Origin: Takakia lepidozioides
Lineage: Eukaryota; Plantae; Bryophyta
Direction: 5' to 3'
DNA length: 64,000 nucleotides
Assembly: GCA_030704615.1 (NCBI GenBank)
Contig: CM060732.1
Location: forward strand, 32,426,001 to 32,490,000
The translations under genes were made by a program, and so were the position numbers. Positions 178-58,291 of the stretch are shown here, piece by piece. The notes beneath the pieces are model-generated. The model worked only from the letters and a program-made list of their open reading frames with translations. It was not told the DNA's origin and did no database searches. How positions within the stretch are numbered: the stretch's first letter is position 1; every line of letters starts with the position of its first letter.

Positions 178-215
<38 letters not shown>
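178..215. repeat. (TTA)n microsatellite = (TAA)n 3' tail/target of LINE-A
   Basis: About 12 TTA units seen directly at the 3' end of the minus-strand LINE. Confidence 0.85.
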
Positions 216-532
216 TTATATTTTATATTTTTTAGAACAGGGACAGAGGCCCTGGTTAGGTTTATTGCAAATTATTCGGGGAAAAAAATTAAAACCCCCT
301 TTTACACCACGAGGCACACACACCCTTTTTCAGTGAAAGAACGAACCTTGACCCCATGTAGAGGGAATCTATCGAAACCCGACTTGACTAGAATCGAACT
401 AGCGACATTATCGGTTTCCTACCGATTTGTATCGACCATGATCGTGGACCTTCAAGTAAGTCTAGATTGTCAGAATAATAAAGCAGTTATGTGGGCATTA
501 AAAGTGTCTTCCTGAATATTGATCGAGGCTAC

Positions 533-640
533 CTATCCCTGGGTATAGTGAAGCCGTGAGGCTTTTGTGGAACACTTAAGATGTTTCCAATTAATGTCCC
601 TTTCAAACTCGGGAGATGCGGTGGAGTGCTGCACGAAGTC
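533..640 (-). CDS. candidate +1-frame micro-ORF overlapping the LINE-A ORF2 stop (..PEFERDINWKHLKCSTKASRLHYTQG*)
   Basis: Homologous peptide in the same +1 register in LINE-B (9679-9770) and LINE-C (34960-35058). Start/entry point unknown. Confidence 0.5.
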   Translation of the reverse strand, partial: DFVQHSTASPEFERDINWKHLKCSTKASRLHYTQG

Positions 641-2602
641 CCCTCCATGAGGGAGGTGGCGGGTCGGACCAGATGCAGGAGTCTGGGGATTCACTCTAGC
701 AAATGAGGCCCTGATTCCCCCAGGTGGAGCAGAACTTACGATGGCTGGCAGCTGCGATTCGAGGCTTCCGTTTGATATCTGCACATAACTGGGCCCATGC
801 CTTCCTGGATTCAGTACCAAGATCGTTAAAAACACAAGCGAGAAGAGCAGAAGTAGTAGTTGTTTCTCCAGAAAGGGTTTTTGTGCATCTTGCTTTCCAC
901 AGATGCCACAGGGTGCTACCCCTAAGTGTTTCAAAGACAGGACAAACAACCGCCGTGGTTTTGGTATTGGTATCATAGTTTAGAAGAAGATCAACAGCAG
1001 AGAGGTGCATGTGGTTCCAATTTGAGTAAAAGGTTTTGACAAGTGGCCATACTGTTGCCGGTGCATGACAATGAAGGAGGCAATGCTCCAAGCTTTCTAT
1101 GATTCCTGTTGCACAACAAGCACATAAGAGGGCATCCAGAAACTGCAACCATTCGCCTACTTTGAGGACTCTGTTAACTATTTGCCAGAGAAATGTAGAC
1201 ATCTTCGCTGGTCTCGATTTGTGCCATACCGACCTCCATATTGATGTCCAGTTTTCATCTCTGAAGCCATGGTGCTAATAATGCTTTGTATCCCTGTTTG
1301 GTTGTGTATGAGAAAAAAGGCTCTAGTTGCCTACCAAAATTCCATGTCCATTCTGAGGGATCAAACTGCAGCTCCGCCAAGGGCCTACCCAGTATCCACA
1401 TGAACGTGTTGGTTGTTAGCCAGGCAACAAGGGAAATCACTGGTGGCGGCTGTGGATCCATCTCTCTCAATGGGGCAGATGTCCAGCAACATACTCTGAT
1501 AGGTGTTATGGAGATGGGGGGAGAACCATCGACTGGGTTGAAGTCAGGTGGAGAACAAGTGTGACATTGTCAATGCTTAAGGTATGTACGACATGGTTGT
1601 TCAAAGTGGTCTGGCTAACAAAAAGCATTGTCAGCATGTTGTTGAGGATTGCGAGTGCCCAATAGTTGTAAGAAGGTCAAATCGGTCATGTCTGCAATTT
1701 CCCCAGCCATTGCTGATCCACAGATTGAATGAGCTCTGAGTATGATCTTCCTATCCTTGCATTGCCAAGAACTGCCGCAGTCGTGTTTTGTGGCTTTAGA
1801 GCATCATTCTGCCAAAGATGGCCAATCTGTGAAATCCCTAACTCATCCCAGGCAGACCAACGGCTGGCCTCTTTTCATTGGGAGGGTGTGGGCTTGTTGG
1901 TATTCAAGAAGAGGTTCTGCCTGAGGATCTCGAAGTAAGTGGATGGTTGTGCTTTCTGTAGAAAGCCCCTCAGCTTACTCCAGGCATGCCAAATAGCGTT
2001 CCATAGCACAGATCCAGGCTTTTTGTGCTTAAAACCATGAACTATCCAGCGGAAAGAGGGGGACCAGGAGATGTTTTTAAGTGGAGAGGCAAGAAGTATG
2101 CTATCCGCCACCAGAAATTTCCACCACCCTCCCTCGGGTCCCATGAAATGGGGAATCCACTTGCCCAATAGAGCGTTGATCTGTGTCTCGGGGTCTAGAA
2201 CGCCGAGCCCTCCCAATTTTTTGGGGAGGCATATTTGGCTCCAAACAACCTGGGGTCTTTTTTGTTGAGAAGAGGTTTCTGCCCCCCATACGTAGTTTCT
2301 GAGCATTCTCTTGATCTGCTGGATCTGAGCTTTGTTGGGTCTCCAGGAACTGGCATAAAACCAGATTCCTACTTCTAATATTTGATTAGTTGTGAGAGCT
2401 CGACCTGTGATAGTAAGATGTTTGGATCCCCAATATGCCATTTTGTGCCTGAGTTTCGAGAGGATAGGTTCAAACATTTGCTGGTCCGTGAGATCTATGC
2501 CAAATGTGTAGCCAAGAAGCTTTGTAGTTTGTCCTGGTTTCAGCCATGTGAGGCCTAAGTGTTGTCCCCAGGTTGGATCTACCCCAAGGTCTGAGCTGAA
2601 TT
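603..2602 (-). pseudogene. LINE-A ORF2 C-terminal half (post-RT region and zf-RVT), frameshifted with stops
   Basis: Motifs KLLGY..LTITGRALTTNQ..WSQICLPKKLGGLG (1875-2639 ORF) and FLWQIVNRVL..CACC..ESLEHCLLHC..WHLWKARC (696-1202 ORF). Reading past the TAG at 696-698, the frame ends at TGA 603-605. Confidence 0.9.
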
Positions 2603-4140: not shown

Positions 4141-6300
4141 TCAGAATGACACAAAGTACAACAATTCCAGCTTTTGACAATGTCACCGTGGACCTCTTCC
4201 CCCTTTTCCAGGTCTGCCCCACACTCCCTTTGCATCCTCTACGCACCCGCATTTGGCAGACCTGTCCACCAGGGCACTATTCAGAATGACATAAGGTACA
4301 ATTCCAGCTTTTGACAATGTCACCGTGGACCTCAGCTTCCCCCTTTCCAGGTCTGCCCCACACTCCCTTTGCATCCTCTACGCACCCGCATTTGGCAGAC
4401 CTGTCCACCAGGGCACTGTTCAGATGACATAATGTACAATTCCAGCTTTTGATAATGTCACCATGGACCTCAGCTTCCCCCTTTCCAGGTCTGCCCCACA
4501 CTCCATTTGCATCCTCTACGCACCCGCATTTGGCAGACCTGTCCACCAGGGCACTATTCAGGATGACATAAGGTACAATTCCAGCTTTTGACAATGTCAC
4601 CGTGGACCTCTTCCCCCATTTCCAGGTCTGCCCCACACTCCCTTTGCATCCTCTACGCACCCGCATTTGGCAGACTTGTCCACCAGGGCACTATTCAGAA
4701 TGACATAAGGTACAATTCCAGCTTTTGACAATGTCACCATGGACCTCAGCTTCCCCCTTTCCAGGTCTGCCCCACACTCCCTTTGCATCCTCTACGCACC
4801 CGCATTTGGCAGACCTGTCCACCAGGGCACTGTTCAGATGACATAATGTACAATTCCAGCTTTTGATAATGTCACCATGGACCTCAGCTTCCCCCTTTCC
4901 AGGTCTGCCCCACACTCCCTTTGCATCCTCTACGCACCCGCATTTGGCAGACCTGTCCACCAGGGCACTATTCAGGATGACATAAGGTACAATTCCAGCT
5001 TTTGACAATGTCACCGTGGACCTCTTCCCCCATTTCCAGGTCTGCCCCACACTCCCTTTGCATCCTCTACGCACCCGCATTTGGCAGACTTGTCCACCAG
5101 GGCACTATTCAGAATGACATAAGGTACAATTCCAGCTTTTGACAATGTCACCATGGACCTCAGCTTCCCCCTTTCCAGGTCTGCCCCACACTCCCTTTGC
5201 ATCCTCTACGCACCCGCATTTGGCAGACCTGTCCACCAGGGCACTGTTCAGATGACATAATGTACAATTCCAGCTTTTGATAATGTCACCATGGACCTCA
5301 GCTTCCCCCTTTCCAGGTCTGCCCCACACTCCCTTTGCATCCTCTACGCACCCGCATTTGGCAGACCTGTCCACCAGGGCACTATTCAGGATGACATAAG
5401 GTACAATTCCAGCTTTTGACAATGTCACCGTGGACCTCTTCCCCCTTTTCCAGGTCTGCCCAACACTCCCTTTGCATCCTCTACGCACCCGCATTTGGCA
5501 GACCTGTCCACCAGGGCACTATTCAGAATGACATAAGGTACAATTCCAGCTTTTGACAATGTCACCATGGACCTCAGCTTCCCCTTTCCAGGTCTGCCCC
5601 ACACTCCCTTTGCATCCTCTACGCACCCGCATTTGGCAGACCTGTCCACCAGGGGGCACTATTCAGAATGACATAAGGTACATTAATTTCAGCTTTTGAC
5701 AATGTCACCATGCACCTCTTCCCCCTTTCCAGGTCTGCCCCACACACCCTTTGCATCCTCTACGCACCCGCATTTGGCAGACCTGTCCACCAGGGCACTA
5801 TTCAGATAACATAAGGTACAATTCCAACTTCTGACAATGTCACCATGGCTCTTCCCCATTTTCCAGGTCTGCCCAACACTCCATTTGCATCCTCTACGCA
5901 CCCGCATTTGGCAGAACTGTCCACCATGGCACTATTCAGAATGATATAGGTACAATTCCAGCTTTTGACAGTGTCACCATGGACCTCTTCCCCCTTTTCT
6001 AAGTTTGCCCCACACTCCATTTGCATCCTCTACGCACCCGCATTCGGCAGACCTGTCCACCAGGGCACTGTTCAGATGACATAAGGTACAATTCCAGCTT
6101 TTGACAATGTCACCATGGACCTCTTCCCCCTTTTCCAGGTTTTCCCCACACTCCCTTTGCATCCTCTATGCACCCGCATTTGGCAGACCTCTCCACCAGG
6201 GGGCACTATTCAAAATGACATAAGGTACATTAATTTCAGCTTTTAACAATGTCACCATGCACCTCTTCCCCCTTTTCCATGTCTGCCCAACAGTACTCCA
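4141..6300 (-). repeat. tandem array of ~16 x ~138-bp units derived from a PLS-class PPR gene, with 414-bp (3-unit) higher-order period
   Basis: Unit starts near 4141, 4281, 4420, 4558, 4695, 4834, 4972, 5109, 5248, 5386, 5523, 5662, 5802, 5936, 6072, 6210. Unit translates to EEVHGDIVKAGIVPYVILNSALVDRSAKCGCVEDAKGV. ORF-track hits recur at 4183/4597/5011/5425. Confidence 0.92.
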
Positions 6301-7892: not shown

Positions 7893-8718
7893 TTGGGCGT
7901 TGTGTTCGAGGGCATACCCTAGAGCTTACATCGGCTTCCAGCCACTTCAAAGCCTTGTACCAAACTGACCTTACCAGCCTGGAACCTTCCCGGCTGCAAA
8001 ACAGCTGCCTGGCCAGTACCCCATCCATTTTGACCCAGCTCTCTGCAGTAGTGCTAGAAGGGGATTTCACGGACATAGAATTGGGAGATGCGCTAAAAAA
8101 GCTAAAAAATAACAAGGCACCTGGAATTGATGTCATGACGGTTGAATTTTACAAGGCTCTATGGCCAAAGCTATCCGAGGACTTCACTCTAATGGCCAAC
8201 TTTATTTTCAACCGCAAGGAGATGTCATCAGCTATGTCCCAAGGTGTCATAACCTTGTTGTATAAAAAAGGGGATAGAACCAATCTCTCTAACTATAGGC
8301 CCATCACCTTGTTGAATGTCGCTTACAAAATCATCGCTAAAGCCTTGGCCCTCTGCCTCCAACCTCTTCTGCCCACTCTTATCAAACCCAATCAAACGGG
8401 ATTTATCAAGGGCCGTTATATCATGGATAACCTTCTTTTGGCTCAAGAGATTCCAAACTACGCAAAAAAAACAAACCAAGCCATAGCCCTTCTTCTACTA
8501 GACTGAAAAAGCGTTTGACAGGGTGGAGTGGTCCTTTTTGCTTGTTGCAATGGCAAAAATTGGGTTTCCACAATCCTTCACTCAATGGGTCAAGATTTTG
8601 CTTTCAACATCCACCAGTAGAGTCACGGTTAACCGGGCACTGTCCAAGCCCTTTCTTCTTCGGAGGTCAGTTCGGCAAGGCTGTCCACTGTCCCCATTTC
8701 TATTCCTCATAGTAGCGG
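7893..8718 (+). pseudogene. LINE-A RT N-terminal segment, inverted relative to the rest of the element
   Basis: KAPGID..EFYKALW..NYRPITLLNVAYKIIAK..QTGFIKGR..LD*KAFDRVEW..RQGCPLSPFLFLIVA. It ends about 12 codons before the sequence that begins the minus-strand segment at 7892. Confidence 0.9.
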
Positions 8719-8956: not shown

Positions 8957-9226
8957 TTGAACATGGATATAAATGTTGTCTTGAATTCTAAAAATCTCGA
9001 ACGAGTAAAACATTATCCGTATGTCTTGAGTGATTGTTTGTTCGACTCTATTGCATTTTTATTGGATTATGAGTATGCATCGAAAGAGTTGCGACAACAA
9101 AGCATGACTTATTTTTTACAAAATTATCAAACCTCCAATGACGATATGTTGGAGATGGTTCAAATACATTTTTCTCCAAAAATACTTTTTGTATTGCATG
9201 CGTCCATACTTTGCAAGAATAAATAA
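8957..9226 (+). pseudogene. OTU-like cysteine protease fragment in AT-rich DNA
   Basis: VLSDCLFDSIAFLL..SKELRQQSMTYF resembles the OTU D-x-x-C-L-F-x-S/A..LR motif. Truncated at the LINE-B tail. Confidence 0.4.
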
Positions 9227-9678
9227 ATATATATGTATTTTTAAAGAGAAAGGGGACGGAGGCCCTTTTACTCAAATTAATAAAAAAGAAAATAACAACA
9301 GGTGGAAAAAATAACCACCTAGGAAGGCCGTGAAGGCTAACGGAGGGGGAACTTCCCCGGAGCCAAAGCTAACTTGCTACATGAGGTGCTAGACAGGGGG
9401 GAAGATTTTTGGTAGCTAGAAGGTAAGAACGAGCATGTTGGATTATGGTTCCAAAGGGGGCAGCGAGAGCGGGGTGGTGGAATCAGGGGCAGTAGAAGAA
9501 GAAGTAAGCCGAGGCTGTTGCAGGCTGCCTGCATTCTACCTGCATGACAGAGGCAAATTAGGTGTGCCCCAAATCAGCAATGGAGATCAAAGCAATGTCA
9601 CTGAAGCACTTATGCGCTTCCAATAGGAGCCACTGTTTAAGCCAGCAGGGAACATCCTATGAAGCACACGTAAAAGAC

Positions 9679-9770
9679 CTAAAATCGAAGCTGAGTTCGG
9701 GACTTTGTAACGCGAGCCTTCTTATGTCTCCAATTAAAGTCACCGTCATCCCCATCACCAGGAGACCTCC
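9679..9770 (-). CDS. candidate +1-frame micro-ORF overlapping the LINE-B ORF2 stop (..GDGDDGDFNWRHKKARVTKSRTQLRF*)
   Basis: ORF2 stop at 9755-9757; peptide in +1 frame, homologous to those of LINE-A and LINE-C. Confidence 0.55.
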
Positions 9771-12700
9771 CAGTCCGCGGGGATAGTGCCATGCCAGCAG
9801 AAACGCAAAGAGGGAAGGCTGGTGTCGAGTATGCCATTTTTCCCCCAGGACTGGAGAAAATCATTGAGCAGCTTGGTCCTGCGTTGTTGTGAAGATCTGG
9901 AAATAGCTGCAGTTAAGATGCCCCAGGCTTTCCTCCCCTCAGTGAGCAGGTCATGGTAGATACAAAACAGAATTGACCTGCCCCTAGGGGGTCTTCCCTC
10001 ATAAACAAAAGAACACCTAGCCTTCCAGAGATGCCAAAGAGTAAGTGCCCTAAAACAAGCCCAAACAGGGCACAAAAGGTAAGCTGTGAACAGGCAGCAA
10101 ATTCAACAACAACAAAGAAATGGGGGGAGGGGATGGGAAAAGATCCCAGTTAGAGTAGAAACGTATCACCATTCTCCACACTCTTGTAGGGAGATTACAC
10201 TCTGCTAAGCAATGTTCGATTGACTCAGGCAGAGTTAAACACAAGTTGCAGCAGGTGTTGTTGAGCATGGTAGCAGCGTTGACTTGCAAGATCCTATGTG
10301 CCAACTTCCACAAAAAGCCTGAGATCTTAGCTGCTTTTGGCTTCCTCCAGATATCTTTCTATACCTTATCCCAGGTTTGCTGTGAGAGATGGAGGTGACT
10401 CCATTTCAAATTCCATTTGTGAAGAAATGATCGGGGAGGCCTTAATAGCGAGTAGGCCATCTTCACTGAGTAGGCAAAAAAAGGTGAGTGGTGGGAGTCC
10501 ATCCAGCTCCATTCCCTTGGGTCAAACTACAGGGAAGCCAAGGGGTATTTAAGAAACCACGTGAAAGTAGAATGTCGAGCCCATGTTAGCTCTTGACCCA
10601 TTGGAGGGCTTGGGTTTGGATTTCCTTTGGAATCAAGCACCTTTATGGGAAATAGAGAACTCTTCGGCAGATCCATCATTCCATCGAGTTGAAGAGTCCC
10701 ATGAAAGTCAGCTTCAAAGGCTATACCAGAGGCTGTATGCCCAGTCACCGCTAGGACTAGGAGGACTATGTTACCTCTATGCAGAGTTGAAGCCATTCAG
10801 GTGGGTGGAGACCACGAGGAATCTCCATCTCTGAGCAGTGGCTTCATATATTCCAGTACTTCATCAAGTAGCGCAGGCCATGCCCTGGCTCGTCTCGGGC
10901 CAAGAATAGGGCTGACTGCTTTTGCAGCCAAGAAATGGTTTTGGTCCCAGATGCTGCCCATATGGGTAAATCCACAATGCTCCCAAAATGCCCATTTTGG
11001 GTTATGGTCAATCAGCATACCAGAGTCCATGTTATAGTTTGCAAAGAGCGGCTGGCGGGAACATTCAGCATAATTGAGAGGAATTCTTTGAGTAAGGGAA
11101 CCTCTTATGGATTGCCAAGCTGCCCATATTGACTGCCAAGGTCTCGATCCCATGTGCTTATTCGCATTCTTGCCTTGCACTACCCATCGTAATGATTGAG
11201 TCCATAGCGGGGAGGAGGTGGGATGCGCATCCATGAGGTAAGGTTGAATGAGCTTGCTCCAAGGACTGTGACGATGAATCAAGGCTCCGGGGATATTCCA
11301 TTTGGCCAAAAGCGCCTTGATCTGCGTTGCAAGATCAATAATCCCAAACCCTCCCTTCTTATTAGGTTGACAAAGCTGATCCCATGAGATGAGGGCACGT
11401 CTCACGGGAGAGTGTGTGGTTGCCCCCCAAATAAAATTCCTGATGAGAGCTTTGATCTCATTCGTGAGCTTGGTTCCTGGATCCCAGACTGCAGCAAAGA
11501 ACCAAGTGGAGGCGAGAAGTACTTGGTTGGCCACCAAGGCTCTTCCAGCTATGGACAGCATGGCTAAGCTCCAGTGAGCAAAAGATCTCTTCAACCTAGC
11601 AATAACCACACTCAAGATGCTTTGTTGGGACAGGTTGCGACCAATCTGATGTCCCAGAAGCGTGTGGGACTCCCCTTCAGGAAGCCAATTGAGACCAATG
11701 TCTTGTCCCCAGGGGTCGCAGTGTGATGAGGTAGCTTGGTTCTGCAGCAGCGAGAGCAGGCCCATGGACTTTCGCCAATTGATCTTCAACCCCGAGCCTA
11801 AACAGAATATCTGTAGGGCTTGAAGGGCACGTTGGATGTTGTCCTGATTTGAATTATCCAACAACAGGGTGGTATCATCGGCATATATGGAAAGCTTGAC
11901 CATTTCAGGTACAAAGGTAGGCAAATGAAGACCCACTATATCATGTCTTGCCTGAAAAAGATGCCCAAGAGAGTCTGCCGCGATGAGGAAAAGAAATGGA
12001 GCTAAAGGGCATCCTTGCCTAACCGACCTAGAGATAGGGAAGGAATGAGATATAACCCCGTTCACCATGACTTTGCTTGAGGCCGAATGCAGCAGAATTT
12101 GAACCCACGTCAGGAAATTGCCTCCCAACCCTGATTTATATAGAGCAGCAAGAAGGAAGGTCCAGTCAATTGAATCAAAAGCTTTTTCAAAGTCCAGCAT
12201 TAAAAACGCTAAAGGCTGATTGTTCAAGGTAGCTCTATGGAGGGCCTCATGCGCCAACAGAATGTTATATAAAATCATGCGGTCTTTGAGGAAACCAGAC
12301 TGCTCTTTCCTGATGATTTTTGGTAACAATGGTTGCAGCCTCAAGGCAAGGGCCTTAGCAATTATTTTGTACGAAGAATTGAGTAGGTAATGGGGCGGTA
12401 GTTCACCACATTGTCTCTCTCACCTTTTTTATAGATCAAGGTGATAAGGCCTTCAGACATCTGGGAAGGCATCAGCTGCTTTTGAAATATATCGTTGGCT
12501 ATGCGGAGAAAGTCCTCCCCCATCGTCTGCCAGAGAGCCTTGAAAAGTTCAATGGGAAGACCATCCGGACCTGGGCTCTTCATAGAGGCCAAAGCATCCA
12601 CCGTGTCACCCAGTTCCTGCACAGTGAACGGTTCTGCCATCCTGCCCTTATCCAGAGTGGTTAGCGAGCAAGGGATGTTGTGCAGGAGGATATGTCTGGC

Positions 12701-13930
12701 CTCTACCACCTCGGGAGATTGTGGACATGCCTGAAAAAGATGTCTGAAGAAATCAGCTGCAGTATTGGTCATCTTCTAGGGGTCACATATCCACACATGG
12801 CCCTCCAGTAGGGCACCTCGACCCCATTCACACTCAATGGCAGATGGTCAAAGTTGTGCTCATGGGGCAGAACAGCACATACTGTCACGGACATTGTCAA
12901 ACAACAGAGCTTCATAAGAAACTGAAGAGCACAAACTTCCACAACCCAAAGCAGGATAATGTGCAAACATGACATTCAATGGCAAAGTTCATGTGAGCCT
13001 GTAAAGGTACAAAAAATTTAGGATAACACATGGCAGTGCCCAAGGTAATGGTTGTCACTGCTCACTTCCTCAACATCAGACAAGATATCTGTCGAAAAAG
13101 GTCAAAAAGCATATGTGTGGAATCAGAAGACAAGAACATACCAGGGGTAAGTAGCGCCGCATATCCTCTACTTATGAGAAAGGCATCAATAGTAGCTGCA
13201 CCTTTAGTCTGCACAGCAGTTGCACCAACCAGCTTTGCCACTCTGTCTGTGTCAATGGCTTTGTCTGCCAGGGCCAAGTTTTGTGAGAAAAACTTAATCC
13301 ACAAACAACAGTCCTTCAGCATTGGGCCCAACTGAAGATATAAACATATACACAGAAAGATACCAACTTTTTCATTGTAATACGTTGTCAAAAAGTTCGT
13401 TCTTGGCTGGATGTGCACAACCGACACCGATCATCCTCACTGTTAGCAATTGACAAAGCATTCAACATGCATTCTTGGAAGAAAATTCAGGCATCAAGTA
13501 GCCCAATCGCCATACATAAGGAATCCCAAGCGTCCCTTTCAGCAACAGAGATATTTTGGACATTGGAACCCGAGCGATCTCCTTCAAATTCAACCATGTT
13601 AAAATCACCTCCAACCACCCAGTGATGAATGTCCGGCTGCTGTAACACTTTCAGCCTCATTTGAGACCAGAGCTGAACTCTATCCTCCTCACAGTTGGGA
13701 GCATGCACATTGACAATCCCTACCTTTCCAATGGACTGGCCTAGGTCTATGGTCATGGATTGAACCCGACCCTATACCCAGATGTCGTTGGCCAAAATAA
13801 TGGGACCCAAGGTGGGGGAGGCCAAGATCGTCATTCCCCCTCTAGTGTCCACCACTGTGGGATTCCAAAATGCAATATGAGAAGGCCAAATAGAAGCACC
13901 TAGAGAGTTAATTTCGGCAGCGTCTAGCTT
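9755..13930 (-). pseudogene. LINE-B ORF2 (APE-RT-zf-RVT), frameshifted, with ~12773-13486 apparently replaced by unrelated DNA
   Basis: ORF track 13487-13756, 12362-12772, 10797-12344, 10050-10313, 9755-10075. Confidence 0.88.
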
Positions 13931-16022: not shown

Positions 16023-17375
16023 GTGGCTAAGCTTGTGGCAAGCAGTGGGATTGCCACCGACAAAGCAGGGACAATGGTGGTGCCTACCCGTGGGGACGGT
16101 AAGAGGAAGAGGAAAAGACGTCGTGTCCTCGAGGTTTCCCTAATCATCAATGAGGGTAGGGAAGTAGTGGAGGGGAAGGGGAAAGGACAGGCCCAGGAGA
16201 GGGAGCGTAAGAGAAAGAGGCGTAGAAGGAGAGAGGTGCAGCCGGGGGAGGGCACTAGTGGGGGAACAAAAGACAAGGGGGAGCTAGTTCAGATGAGCGT
16301 GCAGCCGGTGGAGGGCATTAGCGGGGCAACAAAAGACAAGGGAGAGGTAGTTCAGAAGAGCGTGGATGAGGTAAAGACCTCGGGTCCCCGCAACCTTGAT
16401 TTGCCAAAGATGAAGGTACCCCCCTTAGAGACCAATAAGGTCGGTGACCCCATTGGTGAGTATTGGGAGGCCATGAAAAAAGTAGCCTTCGACTTGGCGG
16501 CGAGGTGGTTCCCTTGGCATATTGATTGGCCACGCCAATCACATCGCCATAGGCGAGCATTCGTGCAAGCACTTGAGGGCACATTTCCGGGTGAGTGGAA
16601 TGAGGGGAAGCTCTTGGAGCTGGTGGGAAAGAACCTCAAGGACAAGAGGTACCGTGTGCGACAAACCATTCACAAGGCACTCAAGGCGGGGGTCGAACCA
16701 ACGACCATGCCACATGGAATAACCAAGGTAAGGCGCACTTCACTTGTCATTGGTGTCTTTGAATGCATGTTCATTGCAGTATGGAGTTCATTAACATTTA
16801 TAGTGTCTTTGTTGGGGCTGGACAGGAATCTTGGGAGGCTCTCATCGCAGGGGAGAGGGAAGAGCTGAAGGCGTAGATCTTCGCAAGGGGACGTGCGGCA
16901 ACTGCAGCCCGCCTCGAGAAGTGTGCGGAATCAACACACAAGTGGGGCCCCGACGGAAGCAAGAGTTTTGTCACCCGATTCGTAAGTGTTCTTTCTTTTG
17001 TCATACCCATTCTTCTTTTTTAGCTTCTCCCTTCCATTATGAATTCTGACCTGTCATTGCATTTGTATGTCATGTGCAGAAAAAAAGTTTGAGAGGCCTC
17101 CCTCCGCCATCGAGCACAACTTTTGCAAGACTCAGGGGTGGAAGGCCCTTGTAGCCTCAATGGCCAAGACGCCACAATTGACGGAGGATAGTGCATCTGT
17201 AGGGGTGGGGATGGGTAGTTCAGTGGCTCGGCCGGATGGGGGAGAGCCAGTAGTAGGGGGTGGTTCGAAGGATGATGTAATCTCGGACTCGGCCTCATCA
17301 TCCTCCAGATTGGAGGCCCAACGTAGCTTGCATTCCTCGGACGAGTACACCTATGACTCAGGTGATGAGGAGTGA
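16023..17375 (+). pseudogene. CACTA TnpA-like (Ptta/En/Spm Transposase_24-type) gene with introns
   Basis: DWPRQ..KRYR..PHGITK, then GT-AG intron ~16728-16825, ESWEALI..THKWGPDGSKSF, and a second intron ~16982-17079. In-frame stop near 16866. Confidence 0.6.
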
Positions 17376-18281
17376 GGGATGGTTCCAAATTAGAGACATG
17401 TAAAGGTAGTACTCGCTTTATGTATGTATTTCTTCAGTTACTTGATCCTCATTCTAACCTTAATGGACATGTGGATTCTAATCTAACCTATAGATTAGAA
17501 TGCATGCATTTCATGCAAGCACAAGGCACACCCCAACCCCCAAGAAAACCCCACCCCAAATACCAGTTGGCTACCCTCCCACCCAGCGATGCCGGCGCGA
17601 CGGCCAGGTGCGACCAGTGACTCTGCTGCGATTCCCCGCCGTCGCAACAGAACCACGCCAACGTGGAGCTAGCGACGCCACAAAGGGGCTGCGACGTTGT
17701 TGCGACTCCAGGGAGTCGCACACGAACGTGCCCTCCCATGGAGCTAGCGATGGTCCCCGGGGGCTACGACGTCCCTGCGATTCCCGGGCGTCGCTACCGA
17801 ACCTCCTTACCCATGGGGGTCTAGCGACGCCCCCAAATGGGTGTACCTCGGCCCAAAATAGGGGAACAAATCCACAGAATCCTCTCCTCCCCCCCCGGCT
17901 GCGACGTTTGGACGACGCCAGCGCGTGGCTAATTCTGGGAATGGGCGATGTCCTTGCGACTGCCCCATGACGCAGGGGAAGGGATGGACCCCCCTCCCTG
18001 CCCTTTGTTGTGACTCCTGGGAGTCGCCATATTGCGACGCCCCGGAGGGGCGGTGTCTTTTCGCCGTCGCTGGTCGTGGCTAGGTGGACCCGGGGATTAG
18101 CGATTCCCTTAGGTCGCTAATCTGCGACGTTCCGGGAGCGACGTGGCGGCGACTTCCCGACGTCGCAATTTGTCCTCGGCGCGCCCCGGGCGCTGTAGTG
18201 TATTTTCGTCGCTAGGCGCGGCGTTTGGAGGTTGTTGAGGCATCGCTAAAACCCCCCCCCCAAAAAAAAAATGTAGTAGTG

Positions 18282-21173
18282 TGACATGGAGAGGTCATTG
18301 ATCCAGTCACGGACTATGGAGTTGTTCGAAGCTGGATTGGTGGAGTTGTCAGGCGGGGAGTATGCCTCGGCAACGGTGATGCCAGCTACGAAGGATATCT
18401 ATGGCAATTGGACAGAAAGAAGGATGTGTGGGGACTATCGTCCTGTGAACCGTCAGACTAAGTCCGATAGATATGCCACGCCAACTCCAGAGGAGATATT
18501 TGATGCCATTGGGCATGCAAAGGTGTTTAGCACATTGGACTTGCGATCCGGTTACCACCAGTTGCCAATCAAAGAGGCAGATAAGCAAAAGACGGCATTT
18601 TGGGGGATTGACCAACATGAGAAGGATTGTTTGTACCAATGGCGGTTCTTACCGTTTGGGTTGAAGAATGCTCCTGTAGAGTTTCAGAGAGTCATGGATA
18701 GGATTCTCGCGGGGCTAGACTTCGCCCGGTGCTACATTGATGACATCATGTCTTTAGTGCTACGGTTGAGGAGCATGAGAGACACCTTCTGGGTGTTTGA
18801 GCGTTTGAGAGCGCACGGGTTGAAACTGCACCCCGGAAAGTGCAAGTTCTTCCACAATCAGATTGAGTATCTGGGCCACATGATATACCCTGGAGGATTG
18901 GGTGTTCAACAGAGAAAGGTGGAGGCCATTGCATGCATTCCACGCCCCATGGATGTGAGCAGAGTTCGTGCTTTCATGGGATTGGCAAACTACTATCGAC
19001 GGTTTGTCAAGGGATTTAGCAGCATTGCAAAGGCTCTTACCAAGTTGACCAAGGTGGGTCAGGAGTGGCAGTGGGAGGAGGAGCAGGAGGAGCCTTTGAG
19101 GAACTCAAGGCTCGATTGACTTTTGCATCTATTCTGAGGCGGCCTATTCGAGGGCGGCCTTTCCAGCTACATACGGATTGGAGTATGCTGGGGATTGGAG
19201 CAGTGTTCACACAGGTGGATGATGAGGGAAGAGAGTTCGTAGTGGCATATGCTAGCTGCTCGAACAATGATGTCGAGGCGAAGCATAGTTCCTATGAAGG
19301 GGAGTGTCTAGCTGCGGTATGGGCAATGACACATTTCAGATGCTACCTCTATGGCAATCTCTTCACCCTTGTCATGGATCACCAACTATTGAAGTGGTTG
19401 ATGGAGTCAGACAAGCTTACAGGGAAACTTGCACGGTGGGCACTTATGCTTCAAGAGTACGACTTCTAGGTGGTGCATCGAGCCGGTATTGTCAATCAGG
19501 ATGTAGATGGATTGAGTCGTAATCCATGCACGAGCAAGCATGATGATATTAGAGCTCGGTGGCATGGTAAGACGGATAAGGAGATGGTGCCAGAATGGCA
19601 TGCATTGGCCTTTCTGTGCATTATAGCAATGGGAGCTCAAACTGGTCTATCTCATGCGATTGGTCATGTAGATAGCGTGCATGACGATCCAGAGACTAGT
19701 GAGGAGCTTGGTGGTGCTAAGGATGTGCATGAAGATGCAGCAGTGTTGGCATACCTTCGTACCGGAGAGACATCAGCCAGTGTGACTACTAAGGAGACAG
19801 ATCGGGTCCTACAACGAGCCAAAAGGTTTAAGTGGGAATGGATTCACCTACTCCGGGTATGGGAGGATGGACGAGTGAGGATTGTGCCTCATCCAACACA
19901 ACGAGCGCGATTGGTATGCCATGCCCATGAGGAATTGAGACATTTTGGGGTGCGGCGTACTCATAGTTTACTGCAAGGGCAGTATTGGTGGCGGGGTATG
20001 CACATGGATGTGCAATAGTTAGTGGCAAGGTGCATGGTGTGTGATAGAGTGCGGGTTTCTTTCAACGCCCCTACTCCACAATTGCATCATTTACCCATTA
20101 TGGGTTTGGGCTATCGTTGGAGTCTTGACTTTGCAGGCCCATTGCCATTGACAATTCGCCATAACAAGTATGTGCTGGTGATGGTGGAACACTTCTCCAA
20201 ATGGATTGAACTGGGGGCATTGCCTGACAAGGCAAGTGAGGGGGCTACGTATGCATTCTTAGATTGAGTGCTTAGCCATTTTGGTGCTCCAGTCGAGGTA
20301 CTCACGGACCAGGGGAGAGAGTTCTTGGGGGAGTTTCAAATTTTGTGTGAGCAAGCCTTGATAGATTACCGCACTACTTCTCGAGATCATCCCGAGGCTG
20401 ATGGCTTGGTGGAGAGAGTTGTTCAGACAGTCAAGAGACGTTTGCGCAAGTACGGTTTGCAGAAGAGACACCTAGGAGATTGGGACCTTCAACTGCCTTG
20501 GCTAGCTATGGGCTATAGGTTCAGCAAACAGGCTTCACTTGCCGCCTTCTCACCTTACTTTCTTCTCTTTGGCCGAGAGCCAGATTTGCCTGCATCTATT
20601 CGAAGGGAGGCTGCAGTAGTTCTCAACCTTGATGATCCGGATGTGTGGACACAAGCATGTGCCCAGCGGGCAGAGTTGTTCAAGAGAATCATGCCTATGG
20701 CTTTTGAGAACCTTGCTATTGCCCAACACCGAGACACATTGAGGTACGCCACTATACGTGGAGGGGGATATCGGCCAAGTGTTCGGCGTTTCCACCCTGG
20801 GGATTATGTGTATCTGGAGCAGATCGCGTCTACGACCTTGGATGTCACAACAGGACGTGTGATTCTAAGGGTCAGGGAGGTGTTGTCTTCAGGAGTGTTG
20901 ATTCTGGAGGGTCGAGACAGCATGGTATGGAAGGACCATGTGCGCAATTGTGCGCCATGTCACATTCCACATGTGGATGGGAGGATAGATCCCAACCTTG
21001 CAGTGGTACCTGCAGGGTTGCATTGCATGCTATGTGGGCATGCTGGTGGCGCCGCAACCATGTTGGTGTGTGACAACTACTCAAGGGGGTGGCACATGGG
21101 ATGCTTGACACCGCCACTTGAGGAGGTTCTTATCGGAGAATGGTTGTGCCCACGATGCCTTGGACAGAGGTAG
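18282..21173 (+). pseudogene. Ty3/gypsy pol: RT-RNaseH-integrase with C-terminal PHD finger; several stops and frameshifts
   Basis: RMCGDYRPVN, LDLRSGYHQ, PFGLKNAP, YIDD. RNaseH: LHTDWS..YEGECLA..DH. Integrase: H..HFG..YWW..CMVC, LDFAGP/TDQG/ERVVQ. PHD: CMLC..MLVCD..GWHMGC..GEWLCPRC. Confidence 0.95.
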
Positions 21174-33883: not shown

Positions 33884-34470
33884 CACTATTAAATATTTCA
33901 GACAAGAAAATTTTATGCAGGGACGAGTAGCCTGCTGGGAAGGTGATGGCGATGGTAGCTAGGGTGTCCGTGTCACCCCAGCTCGTGTGATTTGTGTCAC
34001 CCAGGTGTAATTTTAGTGTATTCTTAGTGTATCTTATAAGATCGGAGTGACATTCTCTTCTGTGTCACCCCAGTCTCACTCCTGTGATTTGTGTAACCCA
34101 GGTGTGATTTTACTTCTTAGTGTATTTTATTCTTAGTCAAGATCGGAGTGACATTCTCTTCTCTGTCACCCCAGTGTCACTCGTGTGATTTGTGTAACCC
34201 AGGTGTGATTTTACTTCTTAGTGTATTTATTCTTAGTCAGGATCGGAGTGACATTTGTCACCCCAGTGTCACTCTGCATGATGTCACTGAGTGTGTGTCA
34301 CTCTGGATAATGTCACCCCAATGCCTGTCACTCCAGATGATGTCAGCTCATTGTGTGTAACCCCGATCTGTGTCACTCTAGAGAAGGGGTGGGAGGATTT
34401 GACATGCCCAAAACTGCGTGTTGTGGGAGTGTGCATTTTCTTTTGGGGTGTTTTTTTCGGGTTAATGGTG
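33884..34470. mobile_element. 587-bp non-autonomous CACTA-like element made of TGTCACCCC repeats
   Basis: TIR CACTATTAA / TTAATGGTG (8/9 match). 3-bp TSD GCC (33881-33883, 34471-34473). Removal restores the LINE-C reading frame. Confidence 0.8.
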
Positions 34471-34959
34471 GCCTCTTCCATCCATTGGATGCCTGCACGA
34501 TCTGCCCCTCCTATTTGCCTGAGTCCATTGAACATTGTCTGGTCTCGTGTGGCTTTGCTCTGCAGGTTTGGGGCAGAATCCGCTCCAACCATGCAACCAT
34601 TCTCTTTAACATCTTTAATGGTGTGCCTTGGCGGTCTTGTCAACTGTGGCAATGCCTCAGAGCTCTTAGCCTTTGGCACATATGGAAGTCACGTTGTGCA
34701 TGGGTACACGAGGGTAGACCTCCATGCCCTTTTGCCACTCTTGCGCGTGTTCATTTTGATCTAATAGTGCAGGGTCGGAAATTGTGGGATTTGCTGGTCT
34801 TGGCAGTTCGCAGATGTTCTGAGAACAAGCGAGAGGCCCTGCTCCTTGCCTTCGACAAAGCTTGGACCCTTCGAGGCATCCTCTGCTCCAGGGATGGAGG
34901 TTACCCCTGTTGGGTCAGTCGAACGCCTGATGTCTGGAAAGCCCTGGCCCTCACCAGCA

Positions 34960-35058
34960 GAGACAGAGGAATTTGAAGATATCAACTGGCGGCACAAGAA
35001 GAACCGGGCTTCGAAAGTCAAGGCTCATCTGAATTTTGATCCCCGCAGGAAGCGGTAG
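34960..35058 (+). CDS. candidate +1-frame micro-ORF overlapping the LINE-C ORF2 stop (..ETEEFEDINWRHKKNRASKVKAHLNFDPRRKR*)
   Basis: Homologous to the LINE-A and LINE-B peptides, same +1 register, synonymous codon differences. Confidence 0.55.
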   Translation, partial: ETEEFEDINWRHKKNRASKVKAHLNFDPRRKR

Positions 35059-36859
35059 ATAGTGGGTGTCTCTCTCAGGCACCCCTTAGCTTTAGTCTCT
35101 GCTGCTCATCTTTTCAGCCTGGACCTCTTTCATTTCGTGTAATGCTTGTTGGGCTGGCTTGGCTGGTTTGGTGGCTGGCTGACTAAACTGGCCTGGCGGG
35201 TTTGGCTGGCTGGCTGGCTAGCTTGGCAGGCTGCCTGGTTTGGCTGGCTGGCTTGGCTGGCTTCTTCTCAATTGCTTTGACCTCCTGATACCAATGGTTC
35301 ATGACTCTTCTTAACGATCAGAGATGCTTTGCAGAAAGTTCCATCTTCTGAGGACTTCTAGTGTAATTCAGCTCTGTTTTTTCTAGGTGGTTTCCATCTT
35401 CCTCTTGGCTTCGTATTCTCAGGCAGTCTTTGAATGCTCGCTGTTGCAATGGACAGTAAATTCTGCTTGGTCAGAGCTTACCCCTTGGGGGTTTGGACTG
35501 GGTGTTACCCAATCACTTTGTGATGAAAGCCTTATGGCCTCCTATCATGGTTATTTTTTCCATGATTTCTCTTAATATGAATTAAAGGGCTTCTTCCCCT
35601 TTAATTTTTTTTTTAAAAAAAAAATAGTATGCTTGAGCGTTTTGAAAAGTACCATAAAGTGGTGAAAAAAGGTTGGTGGGGCATACCTTGTCACAAACTC
35701 CTGAAGAGGATAACATACTCAATGCAAATTATTATAACATTTTTTTTAAATAAAAAATGGTGGGCCACCCCCAAAAGTGCACATACCTGCCTGTCTTGAG
35801 CTCTATCTTGCTACCCTGAATCATCCAGAAGTTTGAACCTTACAAATATGTGGAGCATCTCTGTTTATGTCGAAATGCAGTAGGGAACAATATTTTCCCC
35901 ATCTGCAGAACCTTTGTGTAGTCTGGACGAGCAAGGAGTGGCCTTTGTAAGTTGGATAATATACATGGAATTCTACACCTTTGTTGGCGACTGTGCATCA
36001 CGTTGAAGTCAATGGAGAAAAAATGGTCAACTAACCTTAGAGCACCTTAGAGCCTGTCAAGACTGTTATTGGTTTACAATGTATGTTACATGTGATGAAC
36101 TATGTTTACACCATGTCAAGACCGTCATTGGTCTAAATGATCAACTAACTTTCCACTGTGTAAAGACTGGGATTGGCCTAAGAAATCTTAAATCTAAATT
36201 ATTTCGTAAACATGCCAAAATCCCTATTAGTTTAAAAGTTTGTACAAGTAGAAGCTAATTTTATGCTATGTTAATTGCGCTTTTGTTATTAACTCATGCA
36301 AAAGCTTCAAGTGTTCAATCATATTATCAATTCAAATTATTGATAAACAAATAAAAATACATATACTATTTCATGTAATATATAGAACGGATATAAATAT
36401 ATTATAAGTAAATTAAAACAAAAAACTGGTTCGAAAATTGCAGATGCGTGTACAGCCCCCGCCCTCGATGGTTTAAGCCCACGGCCAAGCTTATAAGCCG
36501 CGTAGACTTAAGGAGTCTTATGGGGGCATCCGAAATGCCTCGACAACATGCCCGATAGGAGGCCACCAAAGACATGATGGGCAAGGTAGCCGTGTCCCCA
36601 ATGGGTGCCATACGTACTTTTTACGCTACCCTTTCGGCTCCTTCTCCTGTTCGAACAAACCTAGATTCTGGGGGTTTTTCTCATTAAGGAAGAAAATTGA
36701 GGCAGGTACTAGAAAGAAAAGAAATGCTAAACATGTACCCAGAGATCCTCTAATCAGAGTCTGAGAATAAAGCGTCACCTCCTACATCTTTCAACCCAAG
36801 CCTTCCCAAGGGCAAGCAGAAGTACTGACCCGCCAACAATCCCGGGATAACGTGAAATG

Positions 36860-55989: not shown

Positions 55990-58291
55990 TCACATGCTCA
56001 CGCGGAAGCATCCCCCATGGAAATGTTGCTCATGTTCGGGAGTAAGCGTGCCATTGCCAGTAGAGCCGGAGTGAGAGGCAAATGCCTGGAGTTGATCAAC
56101 GGGGGAGTCCACCAGTCCAATATCATGAAGACTGAGGCCTTTCTGAACAGAGGCCAACTCAGACAAAGGAGAAGCAGTTAGCCTAGCAAGGACCTGACCC
56201 TTGCGGACACTGATGCTGATACGTTCTGGATTAGCAATCAGTAATCTGACCTCTCCCTTAAATCCCCTGTCTAAAACCCAGAAGCAATCATACAGTGCTT
56301 TTGGAGGGTAAGTTTTTTCCAACCTTCAACCTCAAGGAAATGACCTGTAGGGCAAGCAAAAGCTAAGCCTATAGGTACTATGCGCTGAGAAAAAGCAGGG
56401 ATACTGAAGTCAACTAGAGAACGTAGCAATATGGTATTCTTTGCCATAGGCAGGGGAGGTCCAGACTTCTTACATGGTGGAGGGAAATGCCATTGGTAAA
56501 AATTATCACCAAGTGGTTGGAACTGGCTGAATTTGGCCCAATTATAATGCAAACCCACCTGCTTCTTCATCTGCTCAGCTTGAAGCTTGAGACGAGAATA
56601 GTTGGCCATAGAGGTCCCAGCGGCAATAGTAACATGGCTTAGACTCACCTTGAAAGGTTGCCCCTCACCATTGTGAAGACACATAAGATTGTTCATGATG
56701 TCAAGCTGGCCTTTGCACCCTTCATCCAATCCAGAACCATTAAAATTTGTTCACCCATGGTGACAATGCAGGTCAACAAGACAGTTTTCCCACTAATGCG
56801 GATAGGCAAGATGACCAACCCTATGGGTTCATATGCCGTGCCATCAGCTATGGTAACCTCAATGCCACGAGCAGGGCTAATCTTTAATCCAAGAATGCGA
56901 ATTGTACTAAGTGGAATGGCAGACATGGTACATCCAATATCAATAATACATGGAAAGGAAAGGTGGCCCACATGACATTGTATCATCAATGGGTGGGTGC
57001 GGTCCCTACTGATGCTCTTATAGGCCTCACAATGCATGAGTTTGAAATCATGAGAAAGAACAACACTTACCAGCATTTTGGGGTTCTTACCATGGTCATC
57101 TAACACCCTCACAAACGACTGGGTTCGTTTAAAGTACCCTTCTATTTTTTGTCTCTTTGCAAGTGTTCAATCAAAGCAGGTAAGTCAGATTGGTAAGGGC
57201 ACCACCTGGTGTAATGCTTGGTGGACTTGCAGATCATGCATGCCACCACTGAAGTCCTGGCTTCATGACGAATGCCAGCATTGGTCTTACCTTGAGGCCC
57301 AGATTTGGCAGTGACTGTAGAGTTCCAGCCTACCTCAGCTTTGAAGGCTTGAAGTTCTCCCTGGGTTTCATTACGAAAAGATGACAACCCATGCACAATG
57401 GAAAGGACCAAATCTTCTGCAATACCTTTCACCCCAAGGTCCCCATCAGTATGCTCTACACAGTGACCCTCACTAGCTAGATGAGTGTGTTTTGTGTTGG
57501 CAACTTTAGACAGGCCTGCCTTGGCAGCTTTGAGACGTAGCCTTTCTTCAATCAATTCCACCATCTCATCTTTAGTGCTGTAAGTCTGTTTTTGCATAAA
57601 TACTTTCTCAGCAGGGGGCAAAGCCCTTTACAAAACAATGTTTCAAAATAGCAGGTCTCTCCGAGGCAATCAAAACTGACTTACAGATTGCAGTTCGCAA
57701 GTCAGTGCAGTATTTCCACACACTGTCGCCATAATGAAATTTTAAGTATGGTGTGGTGTAAGCTATGGGCTTTTCTTTACGAAAGAGTTTGCGAGCCAAT
57801 TCTCTGGCTTCTACCCAAGTAAGATCATTTTTGTCCTTAATATTGGACTCAAACAGTTGCCTGGCCTCTCCCTTGAGACAGATCCGAAAAGACTTGACTT
57901 GGAACCGTGGGGGAACTCCATTCATTTCAGTGTTGATTTCAAAAAATTCCAAGAAGTTGTACTCAGGGTATTGTTGCTTATGCATTCGCTCCCCATGATC
58001 AATTTTTTGTGGAGTAGTATCCGGAACTTTAGTTTGTTTCAGCAACATTTTCATAAGCAGGGGGCAATTTGAAATCACCCCCATGGCTTCACACAGCTTG
58101 TCCAAATCAAATGTGGGTTGAGGCACAGTCGCCGGATCCTTGTGATCTCCGGACGACTCTCCCATTTCCATATTATTTCTTTCATTAGTTGCTGTCTCTT
58201 CCCTCTCCTCCGCTGCACGTTTTTCCAACTCACTTAGTCCTATCGTCTCTTCTGCTTCCCTCTCTAGCATAGATCTTGTAAATACAGGCAT
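55990..58291 (-). pseudogene. retrotransposon gag (CCHC knuckle) - aspartic protease - dUTPase-like polyprotein, frameshifted, no RT
   Basis: Gag LKGEARQLF..CFVKG and CMICKSTKHYTRWCP. Protease CIIDIGCTMSAI..ITIADG-like..DWM. dUTPase-like IPAFSQRIVPIGLAFACPTG..VLDRGFKGEVRLLIAN..VRKGQVLARL. Confidence 0.75.

Follow-up and report, generated by a model that had tools for sequence, protein, structure and literature searches.

A conserved +1-frame peptide at the end of ORF2 in L1-type LINEs of Takakia lepidozioides and its possible origin by ribosomal frameshifting

LINE elements of the window

The DNA considered here, a 64-kb stretch of Takakia lepidozioides (the window), carries the 3' parts of three LINEs, LINE-A, LINE-B and LINE-C, together with tandem repeats and other retroelement remnants (Table 1). 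In each of the three an acidic stretch is followed by the peptide D[IF]NW[RK]H[KL]K...[TS]K...L-x-[FY], and the translation up to the stop codon is ETEEFEDINWRHKKNRASKVKAHLNFDPRRKR in LINE-C, SPEFERDINWKHLKCSTKASRLHYTQG in LINE-A and PGDGDDGDFNWRHKKARVTKSRTQLRF in LINE-B. Three-frame translations place this peptide in the +1 frame relative to the conserved ORF2 tail (LWHLWKARC ... WG..GILC ... CW...P..W) in all three elements, where it starts at the UGA of ORF2 or slightly beyond. An earlier sequence-only reading had assigned coordinates, frames and strands to the three peptides, all of which were reproduced on re-translation, and the synonymous codons it had listed (GAC/GAT, ATT/ATC, AAT/AAC, AGA/CGG, CAT/CAC) are present. 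An additional premature ORF2-frame stop of LINE-A, at 696-698, was missing from it; this stop is attributed to decay, since the relative L025 (see below) has a sense codon at that place.

Table 1. Positions of the ORF2 tails, +1-frame peptides and 3' UTRs of the three LINEs within the window
Feature	Positions	Strand	Remarks
LINE-A 3' UTR	178-532	-	terminal motif 237-253; A-rich/(AAT)n tail
LINE-A +1-frame peptide	533-616	-	SPEFER-DINWKHLK...TK...LHY; stop TAG 533-535
LINE-A ORF2 tail (zf-RVT-like)	603-1202	-	decay stop 696-698, frame then continues CIW...PPPPSW; TGA 603-605
LINE-B 3' UTR	9225-9678	-	terminal motif 9250-9266; A-rich end
LINE-B +1-frame peptide	9679-9762	-	acidic GDGDDG, DFNWRHKK...TK...LRF; stop TAG 9679-9681
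LINE-B ORF2 tail	9755-10075	-	LWHLWKARC ... WGKNGIL ... CW...P..W; TGA 9755-9757
LINE-C ORF2, last in-frame piece	34353-34976	+	zinc-binding zf-RVT-like region and tail WTLRGILC...CW...P..W; TGA 34974-34976
LINE-C +1-frame peptide	34960-35058	+	acidic ETEEFE, DINWRHKK...SK...LNF, basic end; stop TAG 35056-35058
LINE-C 3' UTR	35059-35625	+	(GGCT)n-like array 35152-35262; terminal motif 35586-35602; T/A run at element end

LINE-B retains an RVT_1 domain at 10797-12344 (minus strand, E=2.3e-25) and, upstream of it, a weak Exo_endo_phos (APE endonuclease) fragment at 13487-13756 (minus strand, E=7e-4, below the curated cut-off). LINE-A and LINE-C are degraded or truncated on the 5' side in their RT part, LINE-C being a short copy, and match zf-RVT weakly (E=0.004-0.009); each of the three elements shows the C..C...H...C and tail motifs. 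Judging by the weak APE fragment, the RVT_1 domain and the zf-RVT-like tail, the three are plant-type L1 LINEs, and it is the L1 part of the label L1/Tx1, proposed earlier, that holds.

All three elements end in a common terminal motif, AGGGCYTCY.YCCC (3 matches in the window vs 0.04 expected), with A-rich or (AAT)n runs downstream of it, and a GGTTATTTTTTCC-like box precedes it at each of the three 3' ends. By analogy with stringent LINEs, the motif is a candidate recognition element for the reverse transcriptase of the element.

LINE-C is nearly unique in reads and contigs, with one paralogue over 34981-35039 at about 78% identity, and the reads and contigs mapped on it gave no sign of transcription and no informative indels. 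A 101-bp tandem repeat (33982-34255, 2.8 copies, 89% matches) lies directly 5' of the truncated element. The array in its 3' UTR is of the (GGCT)n or TTGGCTGGC-like kind, and similar TGG-rich repeats occur at the same place downstream of ORF2 in the related elements L026 and L028.

Elsewhere in the window, a tandem array of about 15.5 copies with a period of 138/275 bp (4161-6292, 92% matches) is situated a short way 5' of the LINE-A remnant and yields three equal-length ORFs of 129 aa on the minus strand (4277-5494). An RVT_1 fragment (7955-8506, plus strand, E=4e-10) is located between LINE-A and LINE-B on the opposite strand. A retroelement-like region at 16023-21173 (plus strand), with RVT_1 at 18286-19119 (E=7e-25) and a downstream ORF with a PHD finger at 20268-21173 (E=4e-8), is not an L1 of the type studied. 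An ORF at 57142-57621 (minus strand) matches eIF3g at E=2e-5, just above the curated cut-off, and probably represents an exon of a gene of the host at 56-59 kb.

Offset and conservation of the peptide frame

The three elements had been described as very different from each other, and their ORF2 tails are indeed only 27% (A) and 44% (B) identical to that of LINE-C; the DNA of the aligned 3' parts is hardly alignable, with a mean column identity of 61%. For the same pairs the peptide is 44% (A-C) and 55% (B-C) identical, and is thus conserved as well as ORF2 itself. In a six-frame regular-expression scan of the 64-kb window the pattern [DE][IFLVM]NW[RK]H was found at these three sites only, the chance expectation being about 0.005 by a rough estimate from typical residue frequencies.

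A profile of the ORF2 tail matched 330 proteins in a library of 1.84 billion, including full-length ORF2s of 1271-1530 aa, and the position at which ORF2 ends in LINE-A, LINE-B and LINE-C is the usual end of the other L1 tails in that library. ORF2 thus ends at its usual place, and the peptide is an add-on and not a displaced ORF2 end. The ORF2 tail and the peptide were kept separate in every search. Word searches of a set of 5.8 billion proteins gave no match for the +1 ORF of LINE-C or for the ORF2 tail alignment, and an alignment of four +1 ORFs retrieved only the product of L025, one of the four; the +1 ORF had no match in Pfam, PDB or the ESM Atlas. A degenerate DNA motif pattern matched 2 viral contigs and 10 JGI metagenome contigs, all in unrelated contexts and attributed to chance.

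L025, a Logan contig, was found via P0002, a protein 51% identical to the zinc-finger part of LINE-A, so that the peptide had no part in its retrieval. Its ORF2 tail reads CVW...PPQWRG...RV and then TGA TAA, and its +1 frame reads SPEFDKS-DINWKH...TK..L-S-Y-stop, at the same offset as in the window copies; since the retrieval was blind to the peptide, this is a successful prediction. At about 2380-2450 the contig also has an internal deletion of about 75 codons, with a change of frame, by which the LWHLWKARC region before the WG..GIIC tail has been lost.

Two further elements, L001 and L032, come from one other run and are related to the nearest protein match, P0001. Their +1 frames read acidic-DVNFHHLL-stop and acidic-DVNHRNVRM-stop, respectively, a short and degenerate version in which the W is replaced and the tail has only 8-9 codons; the motif is thus not indispensable. 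It was found in no frame of the other L1 tail families inspected (L003, L004, L005 and L006-L012), and is therefore not a general L1 feature. The library protein P0016, a gene call on L032 at 145-627, has W at two TGA codons and crosses over from ORF2 into the +1 reading of the tail; translation of the locus does not give P0016, and the call is an artefact, yet it exposed another copy of the motif.

The +1 offset occurs in all six elements, namely the three of the window and L025, L001 and L032 from two other public runs, a small sample of about four lineages in which every copy is decayed. Measured from the start of the codon for the conserved W (of P..W), the D codon of the peptide lies 49 nt downstream in LINE-A, 52 in L025, 31 in LINE-B, 43 in LINE-C and 64 in L001. 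All five distances are 1 mod 3, so the length of the linker has changed in whole codons. Since the offset recurs beyond the window, with linkers of this kind, it is not a matter of three independent decay events.

These data bear directly on whether ORF2 of active master elements could genuinely end in the peptide, in frame, the +1 position being a product of decay or of a misjudged frame. The decayed state of every copy studied would allow it, and the related family L026 does end in frame with a basic sequence (...IEWNWKRRRR-stop). In alignment, however, that end falls on the usual 'W-N' tail that other L1 ORF2s have, and the in-frame EWNW plus basic residues of L026 and L028 were for this reason rejected as a homologue of the add-on. 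The ORF2 frame is moreover set by the widely conserved W...P..W tail, the motif follows the tail in frame in none of the best 150 of the 330 profile matches, and the same offset is combined with linkers of five different lengths. Descent by decay from an ancestor with the peptide in frame is rejected on the ground that the offset is the same in every lineage and length varies in whole codons, and this reading appears very improbable.

Two other resemblances were noted during the searches. The L026/L028 family, both members of which come from ENA metagenomes, shows a faint +1 sequence, GGDWFRWH, beyond the stop. In the unrelated LINE ORF2s P0034, P0072, P0127, P0133 and P0137 the zf-RVT region starts with K-DFNW[KR]-[LI]FHG, sharing the five residues DFNW[KR] with the add-on; this is regarded as coincidence, because LINE-A, LINE-B and L025 have FLW[QK] at that position.

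The differences among the copies are those expected of a coding sequence. In the six-codon core the variable sites are third positions, all of them synonymous, plus the I/F and K/R replacements, and conserved residues further on are encoded by different codons (R by AGA/CGG, T/S by ACA/TCG, R/K by CGA/AAG). Over 17-20 aligned codons the BLOSUM62 scores are 46-65 in the peptide frame vs -9 to 37 in the two other frames; past the first ten codons, one to three codon gaps were set manually, a bias towards the peptide frame; the alignment of B and C alone is gapless, and this pair scores 65 vs 8 and 0. When an equal number of differences was put at random sites (null means 0-30), the peptide-frame score exceeded the shuffled null in all six pairs, with p <0.0002 for A-L025, A-C and B-C, 0.0002-0.001 for L025-C and L025-B, and 0.02 for A-B. 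The DNA identity of the peptide stretch is not above that of the 60 nt on either side. Protein similarity thus exceeds the expectation from DNA, in agreement with the earlier reading of the stretch as a conserved protein and not an RNA motif; the +1 frame has most likely been under selection at the protein level, and for so small a sample the coding interpretation has good support.

If the stretch were a conserved, untranslated nucleic-acid element (RNA or DNA) of the LINE, such as a site bound by LINE-encoded proteins, its likeness to a peptide would be incidental. Stringent-type LINEs are recognised via elements in their 3' UTR (PMC5135761), and between LINE-A and L025 there are runs without any wobble change, ATGGAGGGGA and GAGTTTGA. 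The excess of third-position change is also modest over all 20 pooled codons, identity being 0.50 at position 3 vs 0.64 at positions 1 and 2. Such an element would, on the other hand, have to combine high protein similarity with ordinary DNA similarity, conservative replacements made through two or three base changes, and indels in whole codons. In the 133 nt around and after the stop no consensus structure was predicted (0 pairs), single-sequence folding gave z-scores of -0.9 to +1.1, and Rfam had no match in the window. The peptide stretch also lies 300-560 nt upstream of the true 3' terminus, which has its own conserved motif, so the peptide region is not the 3'-terminal recognition element. 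A nucleic-acid element is accordingly held to be improbable as the explanation of the conserved stretch.

A possible +1 frameshift near the end of ORF2

A stretch that has evolved like a protein while lying one base out of frame suggests that the ribosome probably shifts frame to make it. According to the proposal, there is a subgroup of plant L1-type LINEs with coding sequence for a short C-terminal add-on, consisting of an acidic linker, the core D-[IFV]-N-W-[RK]-H and a basic tail of about 12-20 residues, in a +1 frame that overlaps and then follows the end of ORF2. The standard product would be the ordinary ORF2 protein, terminated at a UGA a few codons past the W...P..W tail. Some of the ribosomes would shift by +1 (or, with the same outcome, -2) over the final 15 or so codons of ORF2; the simplest place would be NUU-UGA, where a P-site tRNA on NUU could re-pair on UUU. 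The result would be an ORF2 protein with a basic extension, perhaps serving nuclear import or nucleic-acid binding. As a whole, this explanation is given a probability of roughly 0.5, and frameshifting is plausibly the most economical route to the peptide.

In all six elements the ORF2 frame stops at UGA, with A or U as the next base. Its last sense codon is GUU in LINE-A and L025, AUU in LINE-C and CUU in L001, whereas LINE-B has UGG and L032 has AGA. The earlier placement of the shift exactly at the UGA is no more than plausible: NUU-UGA occurs in four of the six elements but not in LINE-B (UGG-UGA) or L032 (AGA-UGA), and both UGA and UUUGA may be by-products of +1 codons such as those for F-E or G-D. 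In the eight codons before the UGA, moreover, LINE-A and L025 share S[TS]ASPEF[ED] in the +1 frame, with four synonymous changes, while the ORF2 frame reads L[HF]R[IF][SP]RV. This conservation, from one pair with few changes, hints that the shift may lie upstream of the stop, or else that the overlapping ORF is independent.

Beyond the D codon the +1 frame is open for 19-26 codons in LINE-A, LINE-B, LINE-C and L025. It has no conserved ATG: LINE-A lacks one over the 127 codons that precede the D codon, and in LINE-B, LINE-C and L025 the ATGs stand at differing positions, which favours entry from ORF2 over a separate start. Readthrough of the stop was excluded, because LINE-A and LINE-B have further ORF2-frame stops past the first one. 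Sites for stop-start overlap or homopolymer slippage were not conserved across the elements. No stimulatory RNA element was found in the 133 nt around and after the stop, neither a consensus structure nor unusual stability; some known +1 sites work without one (PMC5009743).

The +1 frame could instead be a small overlapping gene of its own, expressed through internal initiation or through a spliced or subgenomic RNA, with a product of about 60-150 residues that is free or fused to an upstream exon and does not extend the ORF2 protein. The hint of selection ahead of the ORF2 stop in the A-L025 pair would suit this arrangement. So would the lack of stops in the +1 frame ahead of the D codon, over 57-127 codons in the three window elements (in LINE-C from 34768, 70 codons upstream); the background in the RT region is 0.042 +1-frame stops per codon. 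This openness looked significant and was set aside as evidence, since L1 tails devoid of the motif (L004, L006) also have few +1 stops and the openness may be compositional; in L001 the frame is open for no more than 33 codons ahead of the D codon. Some upstream +1 ATG is present in LINE-A, LINE-B, LINE-C and L025, and a gene caller gave a 67-aa product on L025, but the positions of the ATGs are not conserved, and upstream of the linker the +1 sequence shows no conservation beyond that due to the constraint on the ORF2 tail itself.

Splicing, which the sequence-only reading had offered as a second route through a 3' exon, fares no better. The acceptor-like AGs differ in codon phase between LINE-A and LINE-C and are missing from the aligned positions of L025 and LINE-B, so that such sites are conserved neither in place nor in phase. 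RNA junctions upstream of the peptide, which the earlier reading had proposed to look for, did not appear in the contigs of two runs guessed to be RNA, which cover small parts of the stretch at 80-95% likeness; none of the runs on record as RNA contained the stretch. A separate overlapping gene is on this evidence considered unlikely, though the least unlikely of the alternatives to a frameshift.

Relation to known systems and significance

The proposed frameshift resembles programmed +1 frameshifting at a stop or slow codon, as in bacterial RF2, antizyme, yeast Ty1/Ty3 and closteroviruses, in having a 0-frame UGA at the junction and +1 coding without a start of its own. The bacterial RF2 frameshift site is CUU-UGA. 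The LINEs differ from these programmed sites in that no one shift heptamer is common to the six elements and no stimulatory structure was found. Further differences are that the trans-frame portion, about 20-35 residues long, is a tail and no enzyme domain, that the element belongs to the nuclear retrotransposons of plants, and that the case is known from sequence. The last sense codon NUU of four of the six elements is a further likeness to known +1 sites at stop codons (PMC5009743).

Among retroelements, frameshifting is known in LTR elements and, among the non-LTR elements, in HeT-A gag (PMC5009743). Drosophila HeT-A gag and the +1 arrangement of TART gag/pol provide a likeness, as these are non-LTR elements that need a change of frame (PMC5009743); there the shift concerns gag or the gag-pol junction, whereas the shift proposed here would take place at the 3' end of ORF2 (pol). 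The ORF2 of plant L1s has gained an in-frame RNase H domain (RVT_3), likewise a lineage-specific piece of extra coding after the RT and zinc-finger region (PMC5203782). RNase H is folded and in frame, in contrast to the add-on, which is short, basic and out of frame and lacks a Pfam or PDB match. Stringent-type LINEs and their SINE partners also have conserved sequence downstream of ORF2; in the L1s of the window the candidate of that type is AGGGCYTCY.YCCC with the A-rich tail at the very 3' end, and the peptide differs from it in its distance from the terminus, its protein-type conservation and its want of a conserved structure.

Reviews of recoding and of non-LTR translation, a eukaryote-wide L1 survey and full-text searches, a coverage that is incomplete, yielded no case of a LINE ORF2 that ends in an out-of-frame coding tail or a frameshift; the literature searched thus agrees with the earlier statement that no such product had been described. 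To our knowledge, no recoding event has been described at the 3' end of a LINE ORF2, and we know of no comparable +1 frameshift in a plant nuclear-encoded element.

That these L1s make two forms of the reverse transcriptase through a programmed +1 frameshift at the end of ORF2, one of them with a basic C-terminal tail, is put forward tentatively, with slightly less assurance than the account of the add-on as such. Even if the frame were not reached by frameshifting, it would be out of the ordinary for a LINE to have a conserved overlapping micro-ORF. LINE ORF2 is usually taken to end at its stop codon, and an out-of-frame tail, if real, would mean a second isoform of the ORF2 protein or a third product obtained by recoding. 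It would further mean that annotation pipelines halting at the ORF2 terminator miss coding sequence in LINEs, and it would offer plant biology a natural +1 frameshift cassette. For the elements themselves, it would add a layer of regulation to retrotransposition, acting for example on nuclear import, RNA or DNA binding, or the dosage of the active form.
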